Shown here piece by piece: positions 6,201 to 10,030 of a DNA stretch of 64,000 nucleotides. Each line of letters begins with the position of its first letter. Position 1 is the first letter of the stretch. Source of the stretch: Macrostomum lignano (Eukaryota); the NCBI GenBank assembly GCA_002269645.1, contig NIVC01001103.1:264847-328846 (forward strand), given 5' to 3'. Position numbers and translations under genes: made by a program. The notes beneath the pieces are model-generated. The model did not search any database. It saw only the letters and a program-made list of their open reading frames with translations, and was not told the DNA's origin.

Positions 6201-9200
6201 CACTCTTATCTAACAATAGAACACTCCTATCTAACAGTAGAACACTCTTATCTAACAGTAGAACACTCTTATCTAACAGTAGAACACTCCTATCTAACAG
6301 TAGAACACTCCTATCTAACAGTAGAACACTCTTATCTAACAGTAGAACACTCTTATCTAACAGTAGAACACTCCTATCTAACAGTAGAACACTCCTATCT
6401 AACAGTAGAAAACTCCTATCTAACAGTAGAACACTCCTATCTAACAGTAGAACACTCCTATCTAACAGTAGAACACTCTTATCTAACAGTAGAACACTCC
6501 TATCTAACAGTAGAACACTCTTATCTAACAGTAGAACACTCCTATCTAACAGTAGAACACTCCTATCTAACAGTAGAACACTCTTATCTAACAGTAGAAC
6601 ACTCCTATCTAACAGTAGAACACTTCTATCCTATCTAACAGTAGAACACTCCTATCTAACAATAGAACACTCCTGTCTAACAGTAGAACACTTCTATCCT
6701 ATCTAACAGTAGAACACTTCTATCCTATCTAACAGTAGAACACTCTTATCTAACAGTAGAACACTCCTATCTAACAGTAGAACACTCCTATCTAACAATA
6801 GAACACTCCTGTCTAACAGTAGAACACTTCTATCCTATCTAACAGTAGAACACTTCTATCCTATCTAACAGTAGAACACTTCTATCCTATCTAACAGTAG
6901 AACACTCCTATCTAACAGTAGAACACTCCTATCTAACAATAGAACACTCCTATCTAACAGTAGAACACTCCTATCCAACAGCAGAACACTCCTATCTAAC
7001 ACTAGAACATCCCTGCCTAACACTAACCGCAGGCATTAACCGAGGCCCAGCAAACAATGGCACGGCCACCCAGACCGTCAAGATCGCCAAGCTGACGTCA
7101 TCGGACGTGTTCGCCGACCTGCTGTTCAACATCTTCCCGGACAATTTGGTTGGCGTGGCGCTATTCAAGACGCAGACAGTGTACAAGCTGCCGCTGAAGG
7201 GCCAGCTGGCCAGCCTGGGCCTGCTGGGCAACGACACCATTGTCGAGGACGCACGTTCGACGTCGAACTCGTCGTCAGTGAACATGATCGGCGTGATATT
7301 CTGTGCTGCCGTGTTCGGCATGGCCGCGCGCACCACAGGCGAGCAGGGGCGGCCTTTCATCGCCTTTTTCCAGTCTCTGGCTCACGTGGTGATCAAAGTG
7401 ATGCGCTGGTTTCTCTGGTGAGCAATGCAATAATCGCCCACTAGAGCTATATGCCCATGTTTCTACTTAATCAGTAATATTCTTAGCCCATGATGAACGA
7501 TAAATAATGCACTGCTTTGCAGGCTGACCCCGCCCGGCGTCTGCTTCATGATCGCCGCCTCGGTGGTGTCCGTGCTCGATCCGCAAGGCACTTTCATGAA
7601 GCTGGGCCTCTTCATCCTGAGCGTGACTGTGGGCCTGGCCGTGCACTTCATTCTGCTGCAGGTTGTTTTCATCGTGGTCTCGAGGAAGAATCCGCTCTAC
7701 TTTTTGCCCAACACAGTTCGCTCCTGGTTCATCTCCTTCGCTACCACAGCTCCGTGAGTGTGCGATGGAATGAGCCAATTAATTCGATTTGGTGTCAAAA
7801 CGATTGCTAAACAAAGGGTGAACTTGGGAGCTCAGAGCTGCTGCCCAACCACAGCAGGGTGAACTTTGGAGCTTAGAGTTACTGCCCAATCACAGCAGGG
7901 TGAACTTGGGAGCTCAGAGCTGCTGCCCAATCACAGCAGGGTGAACTTGGGAGCTCAGAGCTGCTGCCCAATCACAGCAGGGTGAACTTGGGAGCTCAGA
8001 GCTGCTGCCCAATCACAGCAGGGTGAACTTGGGAGCTCAGAGCTGCTGCCCAACCACAGCAGGGTGAACTTGGGAGCTTAGAGTTACTGCCCAATCACAG
8101 CAGGGTGAACTTGGGAGCTCAGAGCTGCTGCCCAATCACAGCAGGGTGAACTTGGGAGCTCAGAGCTGCTACTCAATCTCAGCAGGGTGAACTTGGGAGC
8201 TCAGAGCTGCTGCCCAATCACAGCAGGGTGAACTTTGCTCGCCACCTAAATTTACGAAGGAATGCTAAAAAACTCCATATCAGATTTTATGGCTGTTCAG
8301 TTTTTGACCTTTTTAATTAGTAAAGCAGAACTCTCCCCCGGAGGGGGCTTGGTGATAGTCTACTATACTAAACAAGCACTGCTGAATGCACATGTAGGAG
8401 CAGTTTGTAACTACCTGAACCATCCCCGCAGCGTGGTGGCCATCCCGGAGATGATCGAGTGCTGCGACCGCTACGGCCTCAGCCAGGAGGTCTCTCGTTT
8501 CGTCATCCCGTTTGCCGCGGCCATCAAAGGCGACGGCAGCGCTTGCTTCATCGCCGTTGCCGCGGTGTTCCTGGCCCAGCTGACCGGCTTCCCAGTCACG
8601 GCTGGCACCATCGTTGTCATCATCCTGCTGGTGTCCTCCGCCATGCTGGCCCTGCCAAATATCCCATCGGCTAGTCTGGTTATCCTCGTCACCATCCTGA
8701 CTTCCGTTGGCATCTCGGAGACCGAAGTTGGCCTGCTGTACGCTGTGGACTGGCTGCTGTGAGTTGACCGGTTGATAAATTTGAATTTCAATGCTTTGCG
8801 CAACTGCCTACTTAAAGTAACAATACAAGCAGGCGCATCGCCACCGGGGGGACATGTGCCCCGAGTAAAAGCTATGGGGGGATATTCTAATGCTTTGTCC
8901 TCCCCACCCCATCTTGTGACTTGTTGTGGCAATCAATAATTTTTCTTCAGGGCGCCAAAATATAGCGCCTTCGGCGCTAAAATGAGTGCCTGAGACGCTA
9001 AAATGAGTGCCTGTGGCGCTAAAATGAGTGCCTGAGGCGCTAAAATGAGTGCCTGAGACGCTAAAATGAGTGCCTGTGGCGCTAAAATGAGTGCCTGAGG
9101 CGCTAAAATGAGTGCCTGAGGCGCTAAAATGAGTGCCTGAGGCGCTAAAATGAGTGCCTGAGGCGCTAAAATGAGTGCCTGCCGCGCTAGAATGAATGCC

Positions 9201-10030
9201 TGCCGCGCTAGAATGAGTGCCTGCGGCGCAAAAATGAGTGCCTGAGGCGCTAAAATGAGTGCCTGTGGCGCTAAAATGAGTGCCTGTGGCGCTAAAATGA
9301 GTGCCTGTGGCGCAAAAATGAGTGCCTGGGGCGCTAAAATGAGTGCCTGTGGCGCTAAAATGAGTGCCTGTGGCGCTAAAATGAGTGCCTGAGGCGCTAA
9401 AATGAGTGCCTGTGGCGCTAAAATGAGTGCCTGTGGCGCTAAAATGAGTGCCTGATGCGCTAAAATGAGTGCCTATGGCGCTAAAATGAGTGCCTGTGGC
9501 GCTAAAATGAGTGCCTGAGGCGCTAAAATGAGTGCCTGAGGCGCTAAAAGGGATGCCTGAGACGCTAAAATGAGTGCCTGAGGCGCTAAAATGAGTGCCT
9601 GTGGCGCTAAAATAAGTGCCTGTGGCGCTAAAATGAGCGCTGACAACACTATTCTCAAAATAATGGAAATGTAGGAATTTAGCCATGTACATGTTGAATT
9701 CTTAGCTTTGTCCCCCCCCCACCATAAAATCCATGGCGAGGTCCCTGAACACAAGTAACTTGGTGTTTCATTAGTATTACCCGCGCTCAATTCAACAACA
9801 GCGACCGGATGCGATCGGGCTCCATCGGCCTGTCGCACCTGTACTGCGCCGCCTTCACTCACTTTTTGTGCGCCGACGATCTCAAACGCCAGCCGGCGCA
9901 GGAAATCGAGCAGGGCGGCGACGGCTCCGGCGCCAACGGACAGTCGACCTCGTCGCCGCCAGCGAAGGCCGCCAATGACGTCATGATGGTGGAAATTGAA
10001 TCGGAAAAGCCCGGTAAAGCGGCCGCTTGA
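210..10030 (+). CDS. SLC1/EAAT-family (dicarboxylate/amino acid:cation symporter) transporter, divergent; join(210..447,1345..1419,1508..1630,7033..7417,7523..7753,8432..8758,9802..10030), 535 aa
   Basis: All six introns are GT-AG with matching phases (1,1,1,2,2,2). Exons sum to 1608 nt, open to TGA. Family motifs: MPGDLFIRLLKLTILPLI (cf. FPGELLMRMLQMLVLPLI), LLIQPG, DLLFNIFPDNLV, NMIGVIFCAAVFG, RFVIPFAAAIKGDGSA (cf. RFVLPVGATINMDGTA), ILTSVG, AVDWLLDRMR (cf. AVDWFLDRLR). Confidence 0.93.
564..1292. repeat. Intron-1 minisatellite, 33/34/36-bp units (GTAAAGCAAGATGTCAGACAATGTCAGATACCA[G/TGG]), ~21 copies; 33+36 units alternate in the core
   Basis: Direct reading; produces the repeat-peptide ORFs 633-1296. 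Confidence 0.95.
1866..2065. repeat. (CTAT)n microsatellite, ~50 units
   Basis: Direct reading. Confidence 0.98.
2478..2788. repeat. 20-bp minisatellite TTCTGAAATGGGGAATTTAG, ~15 near-identical copies
   Basis: Direct reading. Confidence 0.97.
3285..7020. repeat. 21-bp minisatellite CACTCCTATCTAACAGTAGAA (26-bp variants), ~170 copies, with ~1.1-1.3-kb higher-order duplications
   Basis: Direct reading. The rare variant AAAAGAAGACCCCAATC recurs at ~3707, ~5000 and ~6110. Identical ORFs at 3590 and 4883 are offset by 1293. Confidence 0.97.
7815..8236. repeat. 41-bp minisatellite GGGTGAACTTGGGAGCTCAGAGCTGCTGCCCAATCACAGCA, ~10 copies (intron 5)
   Basis: Direct reading. Confidence 0.96.
8966..9640. 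repeat. 21-bp minisatellite GGCGCTAAAATGAGTGCCTG(T/A), ~32 copies (intron 6)
   Basis: Direct reading; source of ORF 8808-9692. Confidence 0.96.

Follow-up and report, generated by a model that had tools for sequence, protein, structure and literature searches.

The stretch analysed here, a 64,000-nucleotide window of scaffold NIVC01001103.1 in the Macrostomum lignano assembly GCA_002269645.1, carries near its start a gene of the SLC1/SDF transporter family whose ion-coupling residues have largely been replaced. Splicing of window positions 1-10400 at GT-AG sites gives a gene of seven exons on the plus strand (210-10030), with introns that are all GT-AG and a product of 535 amino acids followed by a stop codon. 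Along its whole length the product shows 100% identity to NCBI PAA72232.1, a hypothetical protein of M. lignano (BOX15_Mlig028619g1), and matches the Pfam profile SDF (PF00375, sodium:dicarboxylate symporter family) across the whole core of the family (residues 46-465; E=4.6e-72; 243.6 bits, cut-off 27.9). An earlier prediction from the DNA letters had described an intact gene of seven exons and 535 amino acids with clean splice sites, which agrees with the GT-AG introns and the deposited protein. The range it gave, 7523-9870, covers only exons 5 and 6 and part of exon 7, whereas the gene spans 210-10030 and the residues it discussed in transmembrane helix (TM) 3 are encoded in exon 3. A gene-model artefact was rejected because the model equals the deposited protein and the seven-exon structure is common to a paralogue and to a second, g2 copy of the gene. 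The features are as follows, with HP1 and HP2 denoting the two re-entrant hairpins and GltPh the reference for residue positions.

210..10030, plus strand: complete SLC1/SDF gene of seven exons (spliced translation, exact protein match, Pfam PF00375)
210..447, plus strand: exon 1, amino acids 1-80, N-terminal tail and TM1 (ATG at 210, GT donor at 448)
1345..1419, plus strand: exon 2, amino acids 80-105, TM2, including N101 at the GltPh S65 position (AG/GT splice sites)
1508..1630, plus strand: exon 3, amino acids 105-146, TM3 (alignments)
codons 1564-1581, plus strand: former Na3 ligand positions Y124, I125, A128 and N129 in exon 3 (alignments, codon map)
7033..7417, plus strand: exon 4, amino acids 146-274, TM3-TM4 loop, TM4 and TM5 of the scaffold domain (splicing, secondary structure of the model)
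7523..7753, plus strand: exon 5, amino acids 274-351, TM5/TM6 and HP1a (splicing, helix break of the model at 349-350)
from 7743, plus strand: HP1 tip T348-T349-A350-P351 (intron 5 splits codon P351)
8432..8758, plus strand: exon 6, amino acids 351-460, HP1b, TM7, HP2 and the start of TM8 (splicing)
8526..8552, plus strand: unwound TM7 motif K383-G384-D385-G386-S387 in place of NMDGT, then F390-I391 in place of Y-E/Q (DNA, model)
8643..8675, plus strand: HP2 tip M422-LALPNIPSA-S432 (canonical SIGAAGIPQAG; alignments)
8748-8750, plus strand: D457, the D390 position, in exon 6 (codon map)
9802..10030, plus strand: exon 7, amino acids 460-535, TM8, C-terminal tail and TGA stop (splicing)
codons 9803-9838, plus strand: TM8 residues D461, R462, R464, S465, I468 and H472 (codon map)

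Residues at the former ion-coupling sites

The residue assignments were tested by MAFFT alignment with GltPh and 181, later 319, homologues. The GltPh sequence used reproduces all 27 of the 27 published residue numbers tested, and an HMMER alignment to EAAT2 (7xr4) independently gives the same equivalences. In TM3, GltPh Y89, T92 and S93 correspond to I125, A128 and N129; in TM7, N310, M311, D312, G313 and T314 correspond to K383, G384, D385, G386 and S387, followed by F390 and I391 in place of Y317 and Q318 (Tyr and Glu in the EAATs), the codons reading AAA GGC GAC GGC AGC and, further on, TTC ATC; in TM8, N401 and D405 have become I468 and H472. Retained are D312 (D385), D390 (D457), D394 (D461), R397 (R464) and the EAAT-type R395 (R462), and D461, R462 and R464 are invariant in the alignment of the clade described below. 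The tips of both hairpins are altered as well: HP1 TRSSSGTLP aligns to TTAPVVAIP, and in the HP2 tip P426, P429, S430 and S432 are invariant in the clade. The substitutions and retained residues of the original prediction thus recur in both alignments, including its HP1 alignment; its shorthand of SSS changed to TAP is off by one position, as S277-S278-S279 align with A350-P351-V352.

Set against the structurally defined sites, little of the coupling apparatus is left. In GltTk, Na1 is formed by the D405 carboxylate with the carbonyls of G306, N310 and N401, Na2 by carbonyls of HP2 and TM7 with the sulfur of M311 as sole side-chain ligand, and Na3 by T92, S93, the N310 carboxamide, D312 and the Y89 carbonyl (PMC5110648). 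In the window protein, only D312 of the Na3 set T92, S/T93, N310 and D312 is kept (A128, N129, K383, D385), the Na2 methionine is G384, and the Na1/K1 carboxylate is H472. In EAAC1, D454 (position 405) belongs to the Na1/K1 site and its replacement by Ala abolishes K+ binding and relocation, while the roles of proton acceptor and K2 site have been proposed for E373, at position 318 (PMC7537348); this glutamate and its neighbour Tyr317 are F390-I391 here. By the operational definition of an intact set of Na+ sites in PMC12668577 ([S/T]92-93, N310, [M/S]311, [D/E]312, [D/E]405), position 312 alone passes and five of the six signature positions fail. The Na1, Na2 and Na3 side-chain ligands T92, S93, N310, D405 and M311 and the H+/K+ pair Y317 and E318 are therefore replaced, while D461 and R464 preserve the residues of acidic amino-acid recognition, D394 for the amino group and R397 for the distal carboxylate (PMC3737229, PMC7537348).

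The loss goes beyond general divergence. Among 66 columns conserved at 90% or more in canonical EAATs with Tyr-Glu at 317/318, one of the eight ion-coupling side-chain columns is kept, compared with 34 of the 58 others (Fisher p=0.02), so the changes are concentrated on the coupling sites, in line with the earlier statement that nearly every coupling residue differs.

The fold itself is predicted to be intact. An AlphaFold2 monomer model from a 93-sequence alignment (predicted local distance difference test, pLDDT, 85; predicted TM-score, pTM, 0.84) has the elevator anatomy of SLC1: scaffold and transport domains, two re-entrant hairpins with breaks at 349-350 (HP1) and 425-430 (HP2), and a TM7 unwound exactly at K383-G384. 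Its target-normalised TM-scores to inward-facing EAAT2, ASCT2 and EAAT3 are 0.91-0.95, and the protein's best relatives among solved structures are human EAAT2, EAAT1, EAAT3 and ASCT1/2.

Substitutions within the former Na3 pocket do not vary freely among the 173 sequences that fail a canonical filter (N310, M/L311, D405), but fall into distinct combinations:

K310: D312 in 46/46; T92 kept in 3/44
N310: D312 in 54/63; T92 kept in 50/60
S310: N312 in 33/36; T92 kept in 31/36
G310: R311, a non-acidic 312 and Q405 in 11/11; T92 kept in 10/11

Fourteen further proteins with N310 and D312 carry R311. Most combinations of positions 310, 311, 312 and 92 would plausibly leave the Na3 pocket either with a cation site (N/D/T) or charge-balanced (K+/D-, S/N, R+/D-); the G310/R311 forms, with a basic residue and no acidic 312, fall outside this scheme. 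Such covariation is what would be expected if a protein side chain took over the electrostatic role of the Na3 ion.

These data bear directly on the view that the protein is still a Na+-coupled symporter of reduced or remodelled stoichiometry, using one Na+ at a main-chain Na2 site or at a site built from N129, D385 and H472. In favour of this view, Na2 is coordinated chiefly by backbone carbonyls, D312 is kept, the Asn that replaces S93 could still ligate a cation, EAAC1 D454N has near-normal Na+ affinity, and coupling is not fully predicted by site residues. However, it would have to accommodate the failure of five of the six signature positions, a glycine in place of the only Na2 side-chain ligand, a lysine at 310 that would compete electrostatically with a cation at Na3 and Na1, and the loss of T92 specifically in K310 proteins as against their N310 relatives. 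We consider it unlikely.

Relatives, selection and gene copies

The closest relative is a 64%-identical M. lignano paralogue with the same seven exons, followed by about 40 cestode proteins at 42-48% identity, whereas canonical EAATs are more distant (28-32%). All sampled relatives from cestodes, the monogenean Cichlidogyrus and Macrostomum have Lys310 followed by x-Asp312, and Lys310 is invariant in the 26 flatworm-clade proteins. A wider group came to light when a Pecten relative and a clade profile, the latter run against 1.8 billion representatives, served as queries. It comprises proteins automatically named ‘excitatory amino acid transporter-like’ from hemichordates, molluscs, nemerteans, trematodes (Clonorchis, Opisthorchis), the annelid Owenia and the gnathiferan Seison. 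At position 405 its members mostly carry His and in fewer cases Q, T, V, I, N or S; they further have F/Y then Ile at 317/318, Ser at 314, Ile/Val at 89, Asn at 93 and the HP2 tip pattern A-x-P-x-[IV]-P-S-x-S. We define the Lys310/His405 clade by K310-x-D312, S314, [F/Y]317, a non-acidic 318, I/V89, N93, the same HP2 tip pattern and a non-acidic 405; the window protein has every one of these features. A planarian or schistosome member was absent among the matches listed, which may reflect real loss or a limit of the search.

In a distance-based neighbour-joining tree with 200 bootstraps, the window protein, the cestode proteins and the monogenean protein form a flatworm Lys310 clade (96%), all 63 sequences without D405 form one clade (54%), and the split between canonical EAATs and this clade together with an arthropod group has 100% support. 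By Fitch parsimony on the tree, the ancestral residues of the clade include H405, I318, D312, N401 and T92. The Lys310 subfamily is nested within an ‘EAAT-like’ clade with His405 and Ile318 that spans Spiralia and hemichordates, and the window gene, judged by its relatives, is one member of an old and widespread subfamily and not a singular oddity. The original prediction had named substitutions confined to one copy and a ratio of non-synonymous to synonymous rates (dN/dS) near 1 as findings that would speak against it; instead, at least 45 relatives share the ion-site substitutions, and the gene is under purifying selection.

Several related proteins depart from both the canonical and the Lys310 pattern. 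The arthropod group (decapods, barnacle, termite) keeps NMDGT and D405, with F-V at 317/318, YFTS in TM3 and the HP2 tip S-A-S-V-P-S-A-A, and may represent an intermediate state. Sister to the non-D405 clade, with 100% joint support, is a clade of two of these arthropod sequences (P0159, P0165) and three altered-motif proteins. Trematodes (Clonorchis, Opisthorchis) and some cestodes (Spirometra, Sparganum) have a His405-clade member with N-A-N-G-S (N310, D312N). Other relatives with S-R-I-G-S or S-R-S-G-T at 310-314 and N/Q405 are called ‘putative sodium-dependent excitatory amino acid transporter glt-6’, a name transferred by homology that the residues at their Na+ sites contradict.

The Lys310/His405 clade and its rewritten coupling sites are apparently undescribed, its members being deposited only as hypothetical or ‘EAAT-like’ proteins. 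Literature searches on NMDGT and EAAT in flatworms, invertebrates, tapeworms and Lophotrochozoa yielded no description of the clade; a paper on planarian glia treats eaat2 genes solely as GLT-1 orthologues, and a metabolomics paper on E. multilocularis offered nothing on transporters.

Purifying selection on the gene is strong: comparison with the 64%-identical paralogue gives a dN/dS of 0.17 overall and of 0.074 for amino acids 340-480. Compared with the 99%-identical g2 copy (NIVC01002495.1), there are nine synonymous and four non-synonymous differences (ratio of the corresponding proportions, pN/pS, 0.15); all but one of the replacements fall within the N-terminal tail, and there is no difference of any kind past codon 295. 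A Logan contig (SRR28338165, 1337 bp) is intron-free, which points to a spliced transcript in a related organism; it encodes a close relative of the paralogue that aligns at 75% identity with 57% of the window protein. M. lignano also has a canonical EAAT (YYxxTT, SSS, NMDGT-ALYE, D405), so the variant appears to serve an additional function and not to be a drifting replacement.

A decaying or neutrally drifting EAAT duplicate would fit the many recent duplicates in M. lignano, and no transcript of the exact BOX15_Mlig028619g1 locus was retrieved. Against this stand the intact open reading frame, the canonical splice sites, the dN/dS of 0.07-0.17, the conservation of the same residues across Macrostomum, cestodes and a monogenean, and the transcription in a related organism suggested by the intron-free contig. 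We regard decay as effectively refuted, with a negligible chance of being right, and a pseudogene or relaxed selection was rejected on the dN/dS values.

The same constraint speaks to a further alternative, that carrier function has gone and the protein acts as a ligand-gated anion channel, a sensor (transceptor) or a regulatory subunit. The serine at GltPh position 65 in TM2 (N101 here) is implicated in the uncoupled anion conductance; it is Asn in 22 of 26 flatworm Lys310-clade proteins and Ser in 68 of 76 canonical proteins, and Ser also in other non-D405 proteins outside the flatworm clade. The codon of N101, as worked out by hand from the exon map, was placed at window positions 1495-1497. 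The intrinsic anion conductance of SLC1 proteins would also suit a channel, as would the remodelled tips of HP1 and HP2. However, the strongest constraint lies on the transport domain and the substrate residues (dN/dS 0.074; invariant D461, R462 and R464), the predicted elevator architecture is complete and of high confidence, and cestodes have several paralogues each among the matches listed, which would suit nutrient carriers. A channel or sensor is hence very improbable in our view.

Duplications of SLC1 genes are visible elsewhere in the genome. The paralogue Mlig022109g1 (locus L001, 10001-15435, plus strand) is accompanied, about 6 kb upstream and in head-to-head orientation, by an inverted partial duplicate that is nearly identical to it (L001, 1476-4275, minus strand) and is annotated as the 380-aa Mlig031123g1. 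The 909-aa canonical EAAT model of M. lignano in UniProt (A0A1I8ITF1) looks like two tandem SLC1 genes fused into one, of which the first has NMDGT, YE and D405 and the second is a partial copy with V-N-M-N-G-T (D312N).

The introns and the remainder of the window are dominated by repeats. Four of the six introns contain mutually unrelated tandem arrays, and the short introns (88 and 105 nt) are array-free. Lengths of the array-bearing introns in the gene and the g2 copy (locus L004) are 897/712, 5402/3473, 678/465 and 1043/603, whereas the array-free introns are equal in length. Downstream of the gene satellite arrays prevail, and about 20 further arrays lie in the window. No other genes, tRNAs or Rfam RNAs were found in the window, and all of its long open reading frames fall within tandem arrays and lack a Pfam match.

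565-1232: 69-mer array in an intron, 9.7 copies
1868-2064: CTAT microsatellite in an intron
2478-2788: 20-mer array in an intron, 15.6 copies
3285-7009: 21-mer array in an intron, 172 copies
7815-8235: 41-mer array in an intron, 10 copies
8951-9637: 21-mer array in an intron, 33 copies
12156-26337: 15-mer satellite of 14 kb, 925 copies, strong GC skew (0.5-0.76)
47847-53897: 16-mer satellite of 6 kb, 377 copies, strong GC skew (0.5-0.76)

A tethered cation as a possible coupling mechanism

Taken together, we lean, with modest confidence, towards a working SLC1 elevator carrier that uses a Lys383-Asp385 pair as a tethered cation and is independent of Na+, its substrate being an amino acid with an anionic group. 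The substrate would probably be moved without the usual three Na+. Based on the predicted model and the described ion sites, we propose the following hypothetical sequence, in which (i) the ammonium group of Lys383 would occupy the former Na3 pocket and form a salt bridge to Asp385; (ii) this pair would hold the TM7 motif in the conformation normally induced by Na1 and Na3 binding; (iii) with TM7 pre-organised in this way, Na+ would no longer be needed, so that substrate binding and movement of the transport domain could proceed without it; (iv) since Ile391 and His472 leave neither the canonical H+ acceptor nor the K+ relocation site, the protein would act as a facilitator or exchanger, or would be coupled to H+ through His472 or the Lys-Asp pair. 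The probable substrate is an amino acid that carries an anionic group. Since I468 and P351 stand in the flatworm clade where N401 and S278 would ligate the alpha-carboxylate, its binding is likely to differ in some respect from that of L-Asp or L-Glu. The original prediction had suggested both Lys310 and His405 as built-in cations: the covariation lends indirect backing to the lysine, but His405 as an obligatory cation is not supported, because cestode subclades with T, V, I or S at 405 keep K310.

Several points weigh against this proposal. Binding sites can stay the same while coupling changes (PMC12668577), so site residues are an imperfect guide to coupling. EAAC1 D454N raises the Km for Na+ only about two-fold (PMC7537348), so the loss of D405 alone is no proof of Na+ independence, and Na2, built mostly from main-chain carbonyls, could persist. 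Position 310 at the base of the clade is ambiguous between K and N by parsimony, K310 being either ancestral or arisen more than once; the tree is a neighbour-joining tree alone, with modest support for the whole non-D405 clade; and His405 is not universal in the Lys310 clade. Finally, dS in the comparison with the paralogue is about 1.5 and thus near saturation.

A primarily H+-coupled symporter, with His472 or the Lys383-Asp385 pair as protonation site, overlaps with the proposal of a tethered cation and differs only in driving force. Prokaryotic H+-coupled homologues have changed the same positions (hydrophobic 92, L311, N405), A92 is present here and 311 and 405 have changed too, and histidine is titratable and the inferred ancestral state at 405 of the whole clade. 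Of the prokaryotic signature ([A/L/I/V/M/F]92, L311, N405), however, only A92 fits (one of three; 311 is G and 405 is H), in whole subclades of cestodes position 405 is T, V, I or S, and the EAAT proton acceptor position 318 is Ile. We judge this option less probable still than a remodelled Na+ symporter.

If a tethered cation is nevertheless at work, a wider reading suggests itself, which we put forward tentatively and with considerable doubt: the Lys310/His405 proteins may be the first SLC1 elevators in which side chains stand in for coupling Na+ (Lys for Na3, His or nothing for Na1), and their expansion in cestodes may be the basis of Na+-independent uptake at the tegument. Na+-independent amino-acid uptake across the tapeworm tegument belongs to the classical Hymenolepis physiology; our literature search on Na+-independent uptake in Hymenolepis did not confirm it.

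SLC1 proteins are the textbook case of tight coupling to three Na+, H+ and K+, and the evolution of coupling in this fold is under active study (PMC12668577). A clade of animal proteins with all coupling sites rewritten offers a natural experiment, in which K310/D312, S310/N312, G310/R311 and N310/R311/D312 look like alternative solutions to charge compensation. Database labels such as ‘excitatory amino acid transporter’ and ‘sodium-dependent’ are probably misleading for comparative neurobiology, where EAATs serve as glial and glutamatergic markers. The cestode paralogues would be of parasitological interest, if it is true that they are tegumental nutrient carriers with a mechanism unlike that of mammals.

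Comparison with known systems

Among characterised proteins, EAAT1-5 (SLC1A1-3, 6, 7) are the best matches (EAAT2 7xr4: E=2.5e-70, about 30% identity, target-normalised TM-score 0.91) and share with the window protein the fold, the hairpins, the unwound TM7 and the D-R-x-R motif of TM8 including Arg395. In contrast, the window protein has KGDGS for NMDGT, F-I for Y-E, His for D405, A/N for T92/T93, Ala-Pro for Ser-Ser in HP1 and ALPNIPSAS for GAAGIPQAG in HP2, and lacks the Na1-Na3 side-chain ligands except D312 as well as the H+/K+ residues. ASCT1/2 (SLC1A4/5), which are Na+-dependent exchangers of neutral amino acids, are SLC1 members without K+ counter-transport (ASCT-like sequences share a non-acidic residue, Q, at 318), and match the model with a target-normalised TM-score of up to 0.95. 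However, ASCT-like sequences keep N310, M311, D312 and D405 and replace R397 by Thr or Cys, the opposite of the window protein.

The H+-coupled prokaryotic homologues (Reddy et al. 2025, PMC12668577), which have lost Na+ coupling, resemble the window protein in a hydrophobic residue at 92 and in changes at 311 and 405, but have L311 and N405 and keep N310, where the window protein has G311, H405 and Lys310; the losses of Na+ sites in bacteria and in animals are independent. The dicarboxylate-selective Culex CuqDCT (PMC3737229) is, like the window protein, an animal SLC1 paralogue whose function was altered by few binding-site substitutions. These concern ligands of the substrate amino group (D444N, T448A), whereas the window protein keeps D394 and changes the ion sites.

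We found no description in the literature of a basic residue replacing Na+ in the SLC1/DAACS fold. The principle proposed here has its counterpart in Na+-independent carriers of the LeuT fold, in which a basic residue takes the place of Na2 (BasC K154, ApcT K158, GkApcT K191, CaiT R262; PMC6472337). These carriers belong to another fold and another family, and the likeness, a basic side chain in a former Na+ site, is one of mechanistic analogy only.

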